DNA of 64,000 bases, taken from Rebecca billardiae RCC1528 (lineage: Eukaryota; Protista; Haptophyta). Where the stretch lies: positions 1,984,001 to 2,048,000 of the forward strand of contig OZ251234.1 in NCBI GenBank assembly GCA_965240325.2. The letters are read 5' to 3'. Under the pieces are notes generated by a model. It was not told the DNA's origin. It did not search any database and saw only the letters and a program-made list of their open reading frames with translations. The translations under genes were made by a program, and so were the position numbers. Positions 37,872 to 45,668 of this stretch are shown here, one piece after another (the first letter of the stretch is position 1; each line of letters starts with the position of its first letter).

Positions 37872-37918
<47 letters not shown>
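37872..37918. repeat. (AT)n microsatellite
   Basis: Seen directly. Confidence 0.95.
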
Positions 37919-37922
<4 letters not shown>

Positions 37923-38259
37923 ATGACCGCGTTCCGCGGTCCTTTTCCGTAGAACCAACGCAGTTGGGGGCCCGCGGCGCAGTGGTTGAGAATCGGAGAC
38001 TGACGAGTCAGTCAGTCCGAGTCAGAAAGACAGTTCAGCCACTCTGAGAGGGAGAGTCAGACCCGAGACCGAGTCTCGGACTCGGCGCGAGTATGCGGGC
38101 GCGCACGGCCAAGGGTGGCATGGGACACCAGCGGACGGGCCGCGCGGGGAAGCGGGGCGGCGCGCTCGCACTCGCAGGGCGAGAGGCGCGGACGGGCCGC
38201 GCGGGGAAGCGGGGCGGCGGCGCGCGCAGGGCGAGAGGGCGAGAGGCGCCGCGCGGCGC

Positions 38260-38769
38260 CGGGCCGGCGCGTGCGCGCGTGCGGGCGCACCTGCTTCAGC
38301 TTGCAAGGTGCTCGCGCTGCGCCATGCGCTCGACGAAGGGCCGCTGGTCGCGAGCCGGCGCGTGCGCGCGAGCGGGCGCACCTGCTTGAGGTACTCGCCC
38401 TGCGCCATGCGCTCGACGACGGGCCGCTGGTCGCTCAGCCGGCACGCCTCGTGCCGGCAGAGCGAGAGCGCGCGCCACTGCAGACTGCTGGCCCGCCGGC
38501 CTGCCGGCTGCGCAGCCGCGCGTGCACGCACCGAGCGAGACCGACCGAACGGAGCTCGGGGCGGTGGAACGAGGCGAGCGGCGCGTCGCGCCTGCCGCCG
38601 CGCGTGCGCGCCTGCTCCACCGCGCCGCCGTGCTCGCCCGCCGCCTCCTCCGCCGCGTCGGCCTCGAAGACGGCGGCTGCCAGCGGCAGGCTGAGCTGCG
38701 CGCGGCTCACTCACACTGTCTGTGAGTCCTCACGCTGCTGCCGGACCTCCGCGCCGCCGTCGACCGAGT
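38260..38769 (-). pseudogene. Disrupted or truncated 3' exons, probably of the 38970-41677 gene
   Basis: Coding-like LSLPLAAAVFEADAAEEAAGEHGGAVEQ and SLQWRALSLCRHEACRLSDQRPVVERMAQGEYLKQ|GT. The exon end is duplicated in degenerate form (38260-38350), and a small insertion sits at 38711-38728. Confidence 0.4.
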
Positions 38770-38969
38770 NNNNNNNNNNNNNNNNNNNNNNNNNNNNNNN
38801 NNNNNNNNNNNNNNNNNNNNNNNNNNNNNNNNNNNNNNNNNNNNNNNNNNNNNNNNNNNNNNNNNNNNNNNNNNNNNNNNNNNNNNNNNNNNNNNNNNNN
38901 NNNNNNNNNNNNNNNNNNNNNNNNNNNNNNNNNNNNNNNNNNNNNNNNNNNNNNNNNNNNNNNNNNNNN
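38770..38969. other. Assembly gap (200 N)
   Basis: Run of N. Confidence 1.
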
Positions 38970-41677
38970 TGTGCAACCACGGCGGGGAGGCCGAACACCG
39001 CCTGTCCCGAGCGCCGCATCGAGGGCAACGCAAGCGCCCGGTGAACCCAGGGCGCGTCGCCGCCTGCGACGCCATCGTCGTCGGCCTCAGCGTCCGCTAA
39101 GGCGACTCGCACGTCCGCGTCGAGGACGTAGGGCAACGGGCCGTGCACACCGAAGTGCTCGCCTGCTGCGCGCAGGGCGAGCTCAGAGACAGAGCCGCCG
39201 ACGCTCGCGGCGGCGCCGGCGTAGAACTCGCGCACCGCATCGTCCACCTCGCTGCGCGTGTACAAGGCGCCCGAGGCGCACAGCTCGCGCACAGCCTCGG
39301 CATCCGTGAGCACGCCGAAGTGCTTGTTGTTCGTGGCATCGCACACCACGTTCACCACGCGGACCGTGCCGCCGCCGCCGCCGAGATGCCGTGACGCGAA
39401 CGCGCGGTTGAACCTGAGGATGGCCGGCACCAATCGGCCGTTGTTCGGTTGCGGCCCGTGCTTCGTCGTCCGCTCGTCCGCATCCGCCACCGCGCTTGGG
39501 CGCACCAGCACGTGCGCGTGCGCCTGCGCCTGCGCGGCGGGCGTGTCTCCGCCGAACCTCCGGCGTTTCCCGAAGATGCCGCTGAAGAAATGATCCACGT
39601 GCTGCAAGACATCGCTCATCGCGAACAGCTCGCGTGAGCCGCCGTCGCCGCTGCCGTAGACGCCGCCGCCGTCGTCCGCGTGGCCGCCACCGCCGGGTTG
39701 CGCGGCGGCGGGCGCCTGCTGTGGTGCATGGGAGTGCGACCCCGCTGCGCCAGCCGCCGCTCCACCCATCGACGCCGTCGCCGCCCGTGCCACCTCGCCC
39801 GAGGCAGCACCACCGGAGTCATCTGAGTTGACGCCCGCGGGGCCGTCGGCGGCCGCAGCCGGCGCCGGCGGCGCCGGCGCCGCCGCGGTGACGCCGGTGG
39901 CAGCCGCCCGCGCCTCGGCGGGTGCGCGTGGCGGCTCGGCGCGTTCGGCGCGCGTCGCGGGGCCGCCGGCGGCCGCAGGCGGCGGCGCCGGCGCCGCCGC
40001 GGTGACGCCGGTGGCACCCGCCAGCGTTTCGACGGGTGCGCGTGGCGGCTCGGCGCGTTCGTCGCTTGTCGCGGGGCCGCCGGCGGCCGAAGGCGGCGCC
40101 GCCGGCGCCGCCGTGACGCCGGCGACCGCCGTCGGCGCCGGCGGCGGCGCCGGCGCCAGCGTTGCGACGGGTGCGCGTGGCGGCTCGGCGCGTTCGTCGC
40201 TTGTCGCGGGGCCGCCGGCGGCCGAAGGCGGCGCCGCCGGCGCCGCCGTGACGCCGGCGACCGCCGTCGGCGCCGGCGGCGGCGCCGGCGCCAGCGTTGC
40301 GACGGGTGCGCGTGGCGGCTCGGCGCGTTCGTCGCTTGTCGCGGGGCCGCCGGCGGCCGCAGGCGGCGCCGCCGGCGCCGCCGTGACGCCTGCGACCGCC
40401 GTCGGCGCCGACGGCGGCGCCGGCGGCGCCGAGGTGACGCCGGGCAGCGCTTCGGCGGGTGGCGCAAGTGGCGGCTGGCGGCGCATGGCCCGCGTCCGCA
40501 CGCCGCCGCGCCCGTTGTGGTGAGCCGCCCCCTGCGCGCCGCGCTGCCCCGCAGCCTCCTGCTGGATGCCCTGGGCGGCGTAGCTGCCGCCGCCCACGCG
40601 CGTGCTGCCGTGGCGGGCCGGCCGGCCGTCGGCGCCCTGCTCGGCGCCCTGCTCGGCGCCCGGCTGGGCGCCCTGCTCGGCGCCCTGCTCGGCGCCCGGC
40701 TCGGTGCCCTGCTCGGCGGCCTGCTTGCCCTGCCCGGCGCCCGGCTGGGCGCCCTGCTCGGCGCCCTGCTCGGCGCCCTGCTCGGCGCCCGGCTCGGTGC
40801 CCTGCTCGGCGGCCTGCTTGCCCTGCCCGGCGCCCGGCTGGGCGCCCTGCTCGGCGCCCTGCTCGGCGCCCTGCTCGGCGCCCGGCTCGGTGCCCTGCTC
40901 GGCGGCCTGCTTGCCCTGCCCGGCGCCCGGCTGGGCGCCCTGCTCGGCGCCCTGCTCGGCGCCCTGCTCGGCGCCCGGCTCGGTGCCCTGCTCGGCGGCC
41001 TGCTTGCCCTGCCCGGCGCCCGGCTGGGCGCCCTGCTCGGCGCCCTGCTCGGCGCCCTGCTCGGCGGCCAGCTTGCCCTGCTCGGCGCCCGGCTGGACGC
41101 CCTGCTCGGCGCCCGGCTGGGCGCCCTGCTCGGCGCCCTGCTCGGCGCCCTGCTCGGCGCCCTGCTCGGCGCCCTGCCCCTGCTCGGCGCACTGCTCGCC
41201 GGCGGGCGGCGCACGCACGTGCGCCGCTTGCACCCTCTTCAACGAGCCTGCGCCCTCGACTGTTCCATCCGCGGACGCACCGACGGTGTCGCCAGGGACC
41301 GCAGCCCACGCATGAGCAGACACTCCCTCGGCAGCCCGGAGGACGTACGTCTGCACTCGCCCGTGTGCGCCGACCCCAAGCGCCACGACCACAGCACGGA
41401 CTGCCGGTGCACCCTGCTCGTACACCACGTCCACGGCAGCCCCGTTCGCGAAGCTCGTCGCAGTCGGAGTCGTCCCCGCAGGCGGCGGCGGCCTGCGCGC
41501 GGCACGCGGGCACGACGCCGCGCAACGACGCAGAACGCACGGCGTGACGACATGCGCGAGAGCACGCCGCGCGCGCGAACGAAGACACACGCGCGCGCGA
41601 TGCGCCGCGCGCGACCACGCGGCGCGCGCACGACGCCCGCGCGCGTGGCAGGCGTACCCCCTCGTCGTGCGAGGCAT
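38970..41677 (-). CDS. Large repeat-rich protein with a putative N-terminal Tudor/Agenet-like domain; 3' end lost in the gap; intron 41657-41493
   Basis: ATG at 41677 and a GTACGC...GCAG intron. FANGAAVDV...AVVVAL...TYVLR...[10 protein letters not shown] is followed by an (AEQG)n array, 45-aa repeats, then a non-repetitive region. Confidence 0.55.
39835..40450 (-). repeat. 135-bp coding tandem repeat (about 4.5 units)
   Basis: GTGCGCGTGGCGGCTCGGCGCGTTCG at 40036, 40171 and 40306 (period 135), with a variant at about 39922. Confidence 0.9.
40628..41190 (-). repeat. 12-bp coding minisatellite with higher-order 96-bp structure ([12 protein letters not shown])
   Basis: GCCCTGCTCGGC units; a 32-aa block ([27 protein letters not shown] type) repeats about four times. 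Confidence 0.9.
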
Positions 41678-42417
41678 CGATCGTCCCTCGTGGAGAGCTC
41701 GGGAGCAAAAGTTGCGGCGCGCCCCCCGGCGTCGCATTTCTCTAACTAATTGACGAGCAACGTGCTTCCGGCGGCGGTCCGGGCGGGAGGAGTCGACGGC
41801 GTCGTTTCGTCGCGGGTGGGCGTCAGGCTGCGCGCAATACGAAAGTACCCACCCCCGCTCATTAGGGTACTCCGCCCGAATACAAGGCGGGCGTTCGCGC
41901 CGGTTCGCCGCGAGCGGTATCTTCCGCGTTGCGGGCGAGCGGCGCCATTTGCTCGCTCCCGAAGCTTCTGGCCGTCGGAAAACTGGCGGGGGTGCCAGTC
42001 CGGAAATCGCCGTGCTGAGATGCGGAGGTTTGTCGGAGTTCTGGTTGCTCGGTCGGTCCTCGTCGGACTTCCGGGTTTTTCCCAAAAAGTTATCCGGCCA
42101 TACGCTGGACGTCTCGTCAATAATCGTATCTCGCCGCCGCCGGAGTGCTGGAGCTGTGTGCGTCCCCACAAACCGTCTATACAGTTTACTAATTAAGAAT
42201 ATGAGACGCACACACTCAGTGAGTGACACAGCTCAGGCAGTAGTCATCTATGATAGTATCTAGATTATCTCATCATCATCACAGCTTCGCCCTTTTGAGT
42301 TTTGATTGGACGACCTCTCGATCTCAGGCGTTTCCGGCTCGTACCCGCCGACTCCGGTTTTGCGTCAGCCGCGACCTGGCACGGCATCCCTCCCGCACCA
42401 ACTCCCCCCGCTACGCC

Positions 42418-43701
42418 ATGACGGCAACGCCTCGGCGCGCGCTCCAGGCAGTCGTCTTCCTCCTGTCGATGGGTGGAGCGTCCGCCGTCACGTGCTGCCC
42501 GTCCCCAAACCAAGGCATCTGCGGCTGCGCTCCGTCGTGCTGCCCGGGGGTCGATCCGTCTCCGTCTCCACCGCCATTCCCTCCACCGCCGCCGTCGCCA
42601 TCGCCGCCACCGCAGTCACCGGCGCCGCCGCCTTCGCCGCCTCCACCGGAAGGTTCGCCGCCGCCATCGCCATCGCCGTCGCCGTCGCCGTCGCCATCGC
42701 CGTCGCCGTCGCCATCGCCATCGCCGTCGCCATCGCCGGCGCCAACGTGCATCGGGGAGATGGAGCGCGGCTGCACACGAAACGGCCATTGCTGCGGCGA
42801 CTTGGTTTGCAGCAACAGGATCACCAACGATGAAACAGGGGAGACGTATCGCCAATGCATTGAGCCCGGGCCCTGCTTCCCAGCGGACGCGACCGTGACC
42901 ACGCCTGCTGGGCCGAAGCGCATGGACGAGCTTGCCGCCGGCGACCAAGTCCTGGTAGACGGCAGCGGGACGTTCTCTGCCGTGTGGGCCGTCGCGCACA
43001 ACGACATGCGCGCGGATGTGCTGCACGAGATGGTGCGCGTCGAGCTCTCGTCCGGCCACGTCCTCGAGCTTTCGGAAGACCACTACGCACTCGCCGACGG
43101 TGCGTACGTCGCGGGGCGCGACCTCCGCGCAGGGATGCGGATGCACGTCCCGGGCACGGCGAAGGCCGGCGTGGAGGAGGAGGAGGCGTGCGCGGACGCG
43201 CTCGTGACGGCGACGAGCGCCGTCTTCAAGGCTGGCCTGTACGCGCCGATCACCCTCCACGGAGACATCGTAGTCAACGGCGTCGTCGCCTCATCGTACA
43301 CGGGGCTGCTGGCTCGCGCGTTGCCGCCCGCGCTCCGCTCGGGCACGTTCGTGAACGGGCTCACCCACCTCATCGCCACCCCGCTGCGCGCGCTGTACGC
43401 GGTCGACCCGGCGTTCCTCGAGCGCGTGATGGCGACGGTGGAGCGCACGGAGTCGGGCGGCTTCAACCCGTACGCGCTCTTTGGCCCGGGCACGCTCCTG
43501 TCGCTCAAGAAGGCGGTGGACGCGACCACCTTTGCCGCGCTGCCGCCGTCGTGCGCGCCGTGCCGCGTGGTCGCGCTCGGCCTCGCGCACGTCTGGCTCG
43601 CGAGCGCCGGCGCCGCGGCCGTGTCTGGCGCGGCCATGTCCACCATGGGCGCGCTCGGGTCCGACGCAGTGCACGCGGTGCTGGGCGCGGCGTCCGGCTA
43701 G
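42418..43701 (+). CDS. Secreted Cys-knot/Pro-Ser-rich protein with Hedgehog-type Hint (Hog) domain, 427 aa
   Basis: Signal peptide; GP-CFPADATV (Hint Cys1), KRMDELAAGDQVL, LELSEDH, GLYAPITLHGDIVVNGVVASSY, then an SRR-like HLIATPLRALY. Confidence 0.9.
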   Translation: MTATPRRALQAVVFLLSMGGASAVTCCPSPNQGICGCAPSCCPGVDPSPSPPPFPPPPPSPSPPPQSPAPPPSPPPPEGSPPPSPSPSPSPSPSPSPSPSPSPSPSPAPTCIGEMERGCTRNGHCCGDLVCSNRITNDETGETYRQCIEPGPCFPADATVTTPAGPKRMDELAAGDQVLVDGSGTFSAVWAVAHNDMRADVLHEMVRVELSSGHVLELSEDHYALADGAYVAGRDLRAGMRMHVPGTAKAGVEEEEACADALVTATSAVFKAGLYAPITLHGDIVVNGVVASSYTGLLARALPPALRSGTFVNGLTHLIATPLRALYAVDPAFLERVMATVERTESGGFNPYALFGPGTLLSLKKAVDATTFAALPPSCAPCRVVALGLAHVWLASAGAAAVSGAAMSTMGALGSDAVHAVLGAASG

Positions 43702-44330
43702 GCCGTGCAGTGCGGGTGCATGCTGCGCCCTCCTGATGCATGCAACGCCCACCGACTGACCGAGCTGCCACAGGCGCTGACGCCGTCGGCGTGCGGCTGA
43801 GCAGAGTGGCAGCCGCCCGCTGCCTGATGACGGCACGACTCGCCACTCGGCCAGGGCCCAGACAGAGACTGAGAGAGGCGGCGCCAAGCTGTTACCCGTA
43901 CCGCCGCCCCGCGGCGTCAACACGTGCGATGCAGCAGCCGTGCCTCAATCCTCATCACAGTGACTCAGGCGCCCGCCGACATGTAACGCGCGACACGGAG
44001 ACGCGACCCGGCCCATCTGAGTCTTAATAGTAGTATAGTAGTGTGATCAGTTCGTTGGCTGACAATCACGATGCATTAATACGGCGGAGTACCGAGTAGG
44101 GAGCAAAACGCAGTGATCGCACGGATGCAGCTCGACGTGACTCTCTTGTCTCGACATTTATATATATTATAATTAATGACAGCCGTCCGTGGTCGAGCCA
44201 AGCCGGCGGCGGAGGGTCACCGGCCGGCTGCAAAAAGTCAAAAACCCACCAGGAGGCAGGAGCGAAAAAACCGTGGTGTGGTGGGCGCGAGGATCCTCGG
44301 CGCGTCGTGCGTGGCGTCGCCCACCCGTGG

Positions 44331-45668
44331 ATGGTGTCGGTCCTCGCGGCGTCGTCGGTGCTCATGCACGCCGTCTCGGCCACCAAGTCGCACGTGACCA
44401 AGTGGCACCGCCTCGCCGCGCCGCCCTCTGAGCTTCGGCTGGAGGTGACGCTGGCAAACGGCCAGGCGTTCAACTGGCAGCGGCTGGGCGAGTGCACGTG
44501 GGTGGGCGTGGTCGAGCAGCGCGTCGTCATGCTGCGCGAGTGCGAGGACGGCGTGGACGCGTGCTCGCCCAGCCACCCGCACGACCCGCCCGACCGCCTG
44601 GCCGCCGCCCTGTGTGAGTACTTCCAGCTCGAGGCGTCGCTGCCGGCGCTGCACGCGCAGTGGCGCGAGGCAGACCCGCGCATGGCGGTCGTGCTGGACC
44701 GGCTGCCTGGGCTGCGCGTGCTCCGGCAGGAGCCAGTCGAGTGCCTCTTCTCCTTCATCTGCTCGTCGAACAACAACATCGGCCGGATCACGGGCATTCT
44801 CGAGCGCGTGCGCACCGCGCTCGGCGAGCCGATCGCGCTCGAGGACGCGTCGAGCATCGAGCGCGCGCGCGCCGAGTCGGGCGCGGCGCCGGCGGAGGGC
44901 GCCGCGGCGTTCTTCGCGTTCCCGACGGCGGAGCGCCTTGCGCGCGCGAGCGAGGACGAGCTGCGCGCGCTCGGCCTCGGGTACCGCGCGCGGTACGTGC
45001 GCGAGAGCGCCGCGCTGCTGCTCGAGCGCGGCGGCGCGGACTGGCTGCGCGCGCTGCGCACGCACGAGCGTGCGGCGGTGCAGCAGGCGCTGCTCGACTT
45101 CCCGGGCGTGGGGCGGAAGGTGGCGGACTGCGTCGCGCTCTTCAGCCTCGACCAGCACGCGACCATCCCGGTCGACGTGCACGTCTGGCAGATCGCATGC
45201 CGCGATTTCGACCCGAGCCTGCACGAGGCGAAGAGCCTCACCCCTGCACTCTACGAGCGCGTTGGCGAGCTCTTCCGCGGCCGGTACGGCGCGCACGCGG
45301 GCTGGGCGCACTCGGCGCTCTTCGCCGCCGAGCTGCCCGGCTTCCGAGACCGGCTGCCGCCCGAGCTGCAGCAGCAGATGGCCGACTTCCGCGCCGAGGA
45401 GCGCGCGCGCTCGGCGGAGAAGAAGAAGCAGAAGGACAGGCGCGCGGCGGAGCGCGCGGCGGCTGGCAGCGATGCCGAGGGGGAGCCGACGCCGTCGGCA
45501 CCGTCGCCGCCGAGGAAGGCGCCGACGCGCAAGCGGGCTCGCCCAGAGCCGGCGGCGGCCGCGCCGGCTGACGCACCGGCCCGGGCCAGGTCGACCGGGG
45601 CGCGCCGTCGCCTGACGACGCGAGGCGGACCAGCAGGCTCATCGTCAATAGAAGACGACGACGAGTAG
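44331..45668 (+). CDS. OGG1: 8-oxoguanine DNA glycosylase/AP lyase
   Basis: TLANGQAFNW, GLRVLRQEPVECLFSFICSSNNNIGRI, GLGYRA, HhH-GPD PGVGRKVADCVALFSL...PVDVHVWQIA, and AGWAHSALF. Confidence 0.95.
   Translation: MVSVLAASSVLMHAVSATKSHVTKWHRLAAPPSELRLEVTLANGQAFNWQRLGECTWVGVVEQRVVMLRECEDGVDACSPSHPHDPPDRLAAALCEYFQLEASLPALHAQWREADPRMAVVLDRLPGLRVLRQEPVECLFSFICSSNNNIGRITGILERVRTALGEPIALEDASSIERARAESGAAPAEGAAAFFAFPTAERLARASEDELRALGLGYRARYVRESAALLLERGGADWLRALRTHERAAVQQALLDFPGVGRKVADCVALFSLDQHATIPVDVHVWQIACRDFDPSLHEAKSLTPALYERVGELFRGRYGAHAGWAHSALFAAELPGFRDRLPPELQQQMADFRAEERARSAEKKKQKDRRAAERAAAGSDAEGEPTPSAPSPPRKAPTRKRARPEPAAAAPADAPARARSTGARRRLTTRGGPAGSSSIEDDDE

Follow-up and report, generated by a model that had tools for sequence, protein, structure and literature searches.

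A Hog-domain precursor of the haptophyte Rebecca billardiae with a predicted knottin-like module and a Pro/Ser rod as cargo

Hog proteins that carry a fast-evolving, Cys-containing cargo are already known from protists, including a haptophyte (PMC2362128), and loss of the motif-J Cys from protist, red-algal and moss Hog domains has been reported in the same catalogue (Bürglin 2008, PMC2362128). The chemistry of the domain has been worked out with animal Hedgehog: Cys143 is required there and forms a branched thioester (PMC12054796), and the HPR motif in the first helix of the sterol-recognition region (SRR) of human SHH is critical for cholesterolysis in cells (Mafi et al., PMC7906309). For the D303H exchange in the Drosophila Hedgehog C-terminal domain (Hh-C), a review (PMC9163320, citing Zhao et al. 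2019) describes retention of structure, activity and cholesterolysis together with a widened sterol tolerance. The adducts and the cargo roles of non-metazoan Hog domains have been a standing question since the 2008 catalogue. Here, a Hog gene of Rebecca billardiae RCC1528 (Haptophyta) is described, located at 42418-43701 (+) of a 64,000-nucleotide stretch (the window) that comprises positions 1,984,001 to 2,048,000 of the forward strand of contig OZ251234.1 (GenBank assembly GCA_965240325.2).

From its N to its C terminus, the encoded protein consists of a signal peptide, a first six-Cys module (module 1), a Pro/Ser rod, a second six-Cys module (module 2), a Hint domain, an adduct-recognition region (ARR) and a hydrophobic helix. 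Taken together, the sequence comparisons and predicted structures make it somewhat more probable than an even chance that the gene, which belongs to a set of four paralogs of like design, encodes a Hog precursor for the secretory pathway, the Hint domain of which would release a cargo of about 129 residues with a sterol as the likely nucleophile. The features were assigned as follows (window coordinates):

42418-43701, + strand: complete, stop-free single-exon coding sequence of the Hog precursor, 427 amino acids plus stop, from the open reading frame (ORF) and its translation; GC content at third codon positions (GC3) 0.85
42418-42486, + strand: predicted signal peptide, residues 1-23, with a basic n-region, a hydrophobic core and A-S-A before the predicted cut, read from the sequence
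42493-42543, + strand: module 1, CC-x7-C-x-C-x3-CC (Cys26, 27, 35, 37, 41 and 42), six Cys in 17 residues, from the sequence
42553-42741, + strand: Pro/Ser rod, residues 46-108, SPPP-type and (SP)n repeats, from composition and repeats
42748-42858, + strand: module 2, C-x7-C-x5-CC-x4-C-x15-C (Cys111, 119, 125, 126, 131 and 147), a framework like that of the inhibitor cystine knot (ICK), or knottin
42871-42876, + strand: predicted autocleavage junction Pro152/Cys153, with Cys153 as Cys1 by alignment
42874-43305, + strand: Hint domain, residues 153-296, with Cys153, His194 (42997-42999), S-E-D-H 219-222 (43072-43083) and S-S-Y 292-294 (43291-43299), from Pfam, AlphaFold2 (AF2) and Foldseek
43306-43542, + strand: region resembling an adduct/sterol-recognition region, residues 297-375, with the helix motif H317-x4-P322-x-R324 at 43360-43398, from motif spacing, conservation and AF2 helices
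43555-43698, + strand: C-terminal hydrophobic helix, residues 380-427, from hydropathy and modelled by AF2 as one long helix of low confidence

An earlier note, prepared from the sequence of the window, had listed the signal peptide, both Cys modules, the stalk, Cys153, SEDH, ASSY and the helix, and every one of these elements was found where it had been placed. The same note had proposed a Hog domain, to be checked with the Pfam Hint model. With PF01079, residues 150-295 were matched at 67.2 bits (cut-off 29.7, E 2e-18). When compared by phmmer with the PDB sequences, residues 153-294 aligned end to end with Drosophila Hh-C (1AT0 and 6TYY). For the fold, a model of residues 105-427 was built with AF2 from a 21-sequence alignment (A3), giving a predicted local distance difference test score (pLDDT) of 86-97 over most of the Hint core; with this model, Foldseek retrieved 6TYY and 1AT0 as the best matches (E 3e-11, target template modelling (TM) score 0.83-0.84), and inteins ranked lower. 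Profile, sequence and fold matches thus agree, and the assignment of the protein to the Hog type (Hint plus adduct recognition) is supported.

Residue by residue, Cys153 (codon starting at 42874) falls on Cys1 of 1AT0 and 6TYY, S-E-D-H 219-222 on the T-P-A-H of Drosophila Hh-C, and A-S-S-Y on A-S-C-Y, so that Ser293 takes the place of Cys143. His194 is aligned with Asp46/D303 and, in the crystal structure 6TYY of the D46H form, with the introduced His. Column statistics were taken over the 162 nearest relatives from two database searches, aligned to the Hint profile. Cys occupies the Cys1 column in 161 of them and His the TxxH column of His222 in 160; the Thr place of TxxH holds Thr in 105 and Ser in 55. 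In the general-base column, His as in His194 was found in 158 of the 162, and at the Cys143 place Thr prevails (121), followed by Cys (14), Ala (11) and Ser (9). His for Asp and Ser for Cys had been put forward earlier as peculiarities of this gene. Neither is one: the His is near-universal, and Thr, Ser or Ala is usual at the Cys143 place, in keeping with the known Cys loss in protist Hog domains (PMC2362128). With Ser293, the reaction would have to pass through an oxyester intermediate or take a direct route, and this applies to the whole clade. Nor did the use of His as an argument against a cholesterol acceptor stand up, since the HPR motif is kept here and Hh-C with D303H retains cholesterolysis (PMC9163320); a natural His is thus compatible with a sterol acceptor. 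The closest Hog relatives in the databases, P0013 and P0015 (from Pavlovales sp. CCMP2436 and a near relative), carry Asn in the general-base column (V-N-R-D) and make up two of its four exceptions.

Other members of the Hint superfamily were considered and rejected. The NCBIfam model intein_Nterm reached 13.3 bits against a threshold of 24.5, and Hh-C ranks above inteins in the fold search; what lies between the Hint domain and the stop codon is the ARR with a hydrophobic tail, in place of the C-extein, the C-terminal Asn and the +1 nucleophile needed for splicing. The models for BIL and pretoxin-HINT domains stayed below their cut-offs, with Hh-C again the best fold match. A bona fide Hedgehog (Hedge plus Hog) was dismissed as well: Pfam HH_signal gave no match, whether the whole protein (E up to 1) or the cargo (E up to 10) was searched, and His194 and Ser293 replace Asp46/D303 and Cys143.

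Downstream of the Hint domain, AF2 predicts helices at residues 310-329 and 331-340. The first contains the stretch L-T-H-L-I-A-T-P-L-R-A-L-Y (residues 315-327) with H317, P322 and R324, the spacing of which is identical to that of H374, P379 and R381 in human SHH (HPR motif, SRR helix 1) and which correspond to motif K of Bürglin (PMC2362128). P322 and R324 are invariant in all 21 sequences of alignment A3. Toward the C terminus, the Kyte-Doolittle (KD) hydropathy averaged over 19 residues has its maximum of 1.85 at residues 384-402, and the distant relatives P0005, P0008, P0022 and P0059 end in a clear transmembrane segment followed by a basic tail. Because of this hydrophobic C terminus and the tails of the relatives, the Hog half is probably membrane-anchored through its C-terminal helix.

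Within the cargo, module 2 carries the main structural result. Its six Cys are invariant in the four paralogs, which otherwise share 32-80% identity with the module of this gene (alignment A2); this is more than would be expected by chance. Pfam Toxin_12 scored 17.5 bits here and 19.7 bits in the paralog L008 (cut-off 21), Toxin_23 scored 14.6 bits with the L009 module (cut-off 22.2), and the L007 module gave no Pfam toxin match; in none of the four paralogs was a curated Pfam family of ICK sequences matched above its cut-off. A profile built from the four modules and compared with all PDB sequences gave 19 matches, all of them spider ICK toxins (best E 0.002). From the same four sequences, AF2 modelled the 44-residue module with a pLDDT of 81. 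With this model, the top 12 Foldseek matches were knottins (E ≥ 0.58), among them psalmotoxin 1 at a query TM score of 0.65 and a root-mean-square deviation (rmsd) of 2.0 Å, and a VIA-align scan of 48,161 chains gave 44 at Z ≥ 2, about 41 of them ICK peptides (best Z 4.2). A knottin is therefore the best-supported fold for module 2 and, as judged from the model, a likely one. ESM Atlas contributed little: the feature search with module 2 gave no usable match, and the shape search gave one spider lycotoxin cluster amid unrelated rows, which is uninformative. The ratio of nonsynonymous to synonymous substitution rates (dN/dS) in module 2 is 0.4-1.1, with dS saturated or mosaic; for this reason diversifying selection on the cargo, although considered, is not claimed.

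The toxin-like Cys peptides of the earlier note, for which it had suggested structure prediction, were thus borne out in part: module 2 reads as a knottin in profile and model, with weak scores and almost only ICK peptides retrieved, whereas module 1 has a different Cys framework (CC-C-C-CC) from that of an ICK and gave no match in Pfam, in the PDB sequences or in other genomes. In this genome, module 1 was found in this gene and in L008, that is, in two of the four paralogs. The rod between the two modules contains 37 Pro and 19 Ser among its 63 residues, and part of its DNA (about 42655-42744) is made up of tandem 6-nt and 24-nt repeats. SPPP and (SP)n glycomodules of hydroxyproline-rich glycoproteins of the extensin or arabinogalactan-protein (AGP) kind are present. 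Repeats of these types carry O-glycans on hydroxyproline (Hyp) in plants and green algae. The rod is presumed from its sequence to form an extended stalk, and by analogy it is possibly Hyp-O-glycosylated in this alga.

The genome (72 Mb, 41 contigs) was searched for Hint loci, and at least ten were found, in two subfamilies. Subfamily A contains the present gene, L008 (contig C23), L007 (contig C24) and L009 (contig C3), which have in common a signal peptide, a Pro-rich rod, module 2, the Hog half and a hydrophobic tail; paralogs with variable N termini, which the earlier note had proposed to count, do therefore exist, four of the ten being of this type. Subfamily B consists of six genes (L001-L006) in three head-to-head pairs, at 4.241-4.246 Mb of contig C3, 2.759-2.764 Mb of C12 and 2.537-2.542 Mb of C8; their cargo is longer, different and Cys-rich, with repeated motifs resembling C-x-x-C-x-x-D-x-D-C and R-R-L motifs. 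Outside the four subfamily-A genes, module 2 was not found elsewhere in the genome, and neither were paralogs consisting of cargo alone.

The two halves of the subfamily-A genes have diverged to different degrees. In the Hog half, dS is about 0.07-0.23 in all pairs; over rod and module it is 0.6-1.6 in the comparisons that involve L007 or L009. Nucleotide homology between L009 and the window has its start at 42873, the base that precedes the Cys153 codon. For L008 and L007, the homologous stretch reaches from near the ATG (not more than about 25 nt away) to 6-38 nt past the stop codon. No homology was detected between the flanks of the subfamily-A genes (about 1 kb sampled on each side, about 9 kb on the 3' side). 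Rod length and repeat type vary among the paralogs, and the signal peptide is kept in all four, with the sequence upstream diverging. This mosaic suggests older duplicates, the Hog halves of which may have been homogenised by gene conversion, or else an exchange of cargo at the domain boundary. L008 (C23, 31.1-32.4 kb) and L007 (C24, 1,465.8-1,467.2 kb of 1,497,351) lie about 30 kb from contig ends and may be subtelomeric.

Relatives in other organisms were collected in two ways. A word-indexed search gave 12, the best of which (P0001, 53% identity) is of the subfamily-B type. An exhaustive HMMER search with an alignment of module plus Hog (A4) gave 4,012 proteins at E ≤ 1e-3, three of them at E ≤ 1e-30, and its best match was a protein of Pavlovales sp. 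CCMP2436 annotated simply as a Hint-module protein. No close ortholog of the stalk-knottin type was found in the searched databases. One distant relative of this type is P0100, a Hog protein of 264 residues from a transcript (MMETSP1450) of the red alga Madagascaria erythrocladioides, in which a signal peptide precedes a Cys-rich cargo. Directly before its Hint Cys lies a C-I-G-E...C...CC...C...C module, each Cys of which is aligned with a Cys of module 2 (module plus Hog: 34% identity over 233 columns, E 2e-23); compared on its own with module 2, the module gave a weak match (hhalign E 0.004). P0100 shares with the present gene the general-base His and the HPR motif of the helix. It differs in lacking the Pro/Ser rod, module 1 and the long hydrophobic tail, in having two additional cargo Cys and in keeping Cys at the Cys143 place.

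For 160 relatives with a located Cys1, the 70 residues upstream of it were inspected: 68 had no Cys, 26 had six or more, and seven showed the pattern C..C..CC..C..C. A Cys-knot-like cargo beside the Hint domain thus recurs, in a minority of the proteins. Another Hog family, from metagenomes and transcriptomes (P0005, P0022, P0059 and P0135), carries an eight-Cys module, C-x6-C-x9-CC-x6-C-x3-C..., next to the Hint Cys on its N-terminal side, and its members clearly end in a transmembrane segment with a polybasic tail; it shows that cargo of this kind next to Hint also recurs outside this genome. The Cys modules of P0100, P0005, P0022, P0059 and P0151 gave no Pfam match.

The following course is proposed for the precursor. 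After removal of the signal peptide, both Cys modules would fold oxidatively, module 2 as a miniprotein of the inhibitor-cystine-knot type, and the Pro/Ser segment would form an extended, probably glycosylated rod, with the Hint domain held at the membrane through the C-terminal hydrophobic helix. With Cys153 and the S-x-x-H222 motif, the Hint domain would then shift the acyl group at Pro152-Cys153 from N to S, and His194 would act as the general base for the attack of a hydroxyl nucleophile. This would most likely be a membrane sterol presented by the H317/P322/R324 helix, or otherwise water. Module 1, rod and knottin (residues 24-152, about 129 residues and close to the 130 foreseen in the earlier note) would be released with a C terminus five residues after the knot, possibly bearing a lipid ester. 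Cleavage of some kind is likely; a lipid adduct on the cargo is put forward tentatively, at less than an even chance. Being knottin-like, the cargo is most naturally read as a molecule that binds or inhibits a target, either shown at the cell surface or shed from it. As a knottin, module 2 is as likely to serve as a binder, a protease inhibitor, an antimicrobial or a surface-recognition element, toxicity being neither supported nor excluded.

Several observations weigh against this sterol-dependent release, and three other explanations have to be set beside it. In one of them the architecture is the same and hydrolysis alone takes place: water would resolve the thioester, the rod-knottin glycopeptide would be shed in soluble, unlipidated form, and the Hog half would be a self-removing membrane tether. 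On the sterol route, animal Hedgehog depends on Cys143 for its branched intermediate (PMC12054796); here Ser293 stands in that place, so the chemistry of this Hog domain may differ. The Pfam Hint match ends at residue 295 (profile position 161 of 213), and further downstream no counterpart of the second SRR helix or of the HWY hinge of Hedgehog can be recognised; residues 276-345, compared alone with the PDB sequences, retrieved no Hedgehog chain, so that the HPR correspondence rests on motif spacing and conservation and not on a significant alignment. With an anchor at the C terminus of the Hog half, release by itself would be sufficient as a function. No biochemical study of any non-metazoan Hog domain was found in the literature searched. 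What speaks for sterol transfer and makes plain hydrolysis unlikely overall is that a nearly invariant general-base His (158 of 162) and a conserved HPR motif (PMC7906309) would both be needless for it, and that Hh-C with D303H uses sterols (PMC9163320).

Absence of cleavage, in the protein generally or in this copy, would leave a full-length, membrane-anchored, extensin-like surface glycoprotein with a structural or binding Hint domain. The residue at -1 is the chief reason to consider it: Pro is rare there, occurring in 3 of 160 relatives. In inteins, Pro at this position tends to slow the acyl shift. A search of public RNA data gave no run that contains the gene: from the four small runs retrieved (word share 0.05), no reads were placed on 42200-43900, which weighs neither way. 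Such a protein is nevertheless very improbable, as all catalytic positions are intact, the Hog half is constrained in its evolution (dN/dS of the Hint part about 0.4), the three natural relatives also have Pro at -1, and the sister paralogs combine Gly, Gly and Arg at -1 with the same Hog sequence. A further doubt concerns module 2, which could be another small disulfide-rich fold sharing the C-C-CC-C-C spacing, for instance one of the Dickkopf/colipase-like, IGFBP-like or chitin-binding kind. Pfam Dickkopf_N reached 15.4 bits in L008; in the VIA-align scan, Z was 2.1-2.4 for chains of Dickkopf, IGFBP-5 and Draxin and 3.2 for tachystatin, a knottin that binds chitin. All scores are low, those for the knottin included (Foldseek E > 0.5, Z ≤ 4.2, Pfam below cut-off, a model built on four sequences), the structural ones being weak in absolute terms because only 44 residues are compared, and AF2 may be doing no more than reproducing a fold learned for this Cys spacing. 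ICK toxins rank higher, however, in three independent searches, and the last four Cys of module 2 align with the ICK beta-hairpin region, which is predicted as strands; a fold other than the knot is improbable.

With regard to the gene itself, GC3 is 0.85 over 42418-43701 and 0.88-0.96 in the C-terminal two thirds, which fits the coding region expected for a real gene in a genome of about 70% GC. The N-terminal hydrophobic peak lies at residues 9-27 (KD 1.71). The downstream neighbour at 44307-45668 (+) encodes an 8-oxoguanine DNA glycosylase (OGG_N plus HhH-GPD) without a functional link to the Hog gene. On the upstream side, the stretch at 38711-42229 (-) is repetitive (about 40000-41500, up to 85% GC) and holds long ORFs in several frames, with repeats of the A-E-Q-G and P-A-R-R types and a run of N inside a long minus-strand ORF. 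A segment of about 0.8 kb at 37876-38714 is 76-80% identical to C23:22,235-22,955 and is probably a dispersed repeat; its copies lie a few kb from the Hog gene of the window and from the C23 paralog, but not on the same side of these genes.

In the literature searched, no description was found of a Hog cargo made up of an extensin-like rod and an ICK-like module, of the sharing of such a module with a red alga or of a seemingly homogenised Hog half in a four-gene family. Together with the smaller P0100, the gene offers a compact, chemically tractable substrate for asking whether such a Hog domain cleaves, whether it uses sterols and which adduct it forms, the test cargo being reduced to a 44-residue knot-like module and a five-residue linker. 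If the cargo is indeed a sterol-linked knottin, it would add a new type to the miniproteins that are lipidated after translation, and knottins would have a further, new route of biosynthesis; with hydrolysis only, the family would be a Hog family of the usual lineage-specific sort, its cargo neat but not otherwise remarkable. A long shot that goes further may also be stated: algal Hog domains could make lipid-tagged knottins, with a sterol ester five positions after the knot, that are tethered or vesicle-borne on a glycosylated rod and serve defence or cell-cell recognition. As the knottin-Hint junction is common to the red alga and to this alga, a knottin-like peptide would then perhaps be an ancient Hog cargo that precedes the animal Hedge domain.

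Set against ICK peptides (spider toxins of Pfam Toxin_12, psalmotoxin 1, asteropsins and gurmarin), module 2 has the same C-C-CC-C-C six-Cys framework, a like size (about 37-44 residues) and a similar predicted fold (TM score 0.6-0.65, rmsd 2.0-2.3 Å). It differs in lacking significant sequence homology to them (below the Pfam cut-offs), in its long last loop of 15 residues and in its position inside a larger precursor, from which it is predicted to be released by a Hint domain and not by a propeptide protease. With the animal Hedgehog C-terminal domain (1AT0/6TYY and human SHH-C), the protein shares the Hint fold, Cys1, T/SxxH and, in the first SRR helix, the HPR motif; the cargo is predicted to be released at the residue before Cys1, as it is there. 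Unlike animal Hedgehog, it lacks a Hedge domain and has an additional hydrophobic helix at the C terminus. His stands for Asp46/D303 (the exchange engineered in D46H), Ser for Cys143 and Pro for the Gly at -1, and neither the second SRR helix nor the HWY hinge can be recognised. The Hedgehog-related proteins of nematodes (warthog, groundhog and quahog; short-hog and T-hog of Xiphinema) likewise combine Hog with a lineage-specific Cys- or Ser/Thr-rich cargo in multigene families, but their cargo families are unrelated, their Hog domains have an extra Cys pair, and cargo-only paralogs exist. The protist Hog proteins (PMC2362128), three of which are from the haptophyte Pleurochrysis haptonemofera, have in common with the present gene a signal peptide, a variable cargo with conserved Cys upstream that evolves faster than Hog, a Hint/ARR region, Ser or Thr for the motif-J Cys, and motif K. 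The gene described here differs from them in that its cargo is resolved as a Pro/Ser rod, an ICK-like module and a second six-Cys module, a make-up not given in the 2008 catalogue, in its C-terminal hydrophobic anchor and in its membership of a four-gene family with a homogenised-looking Hog half.

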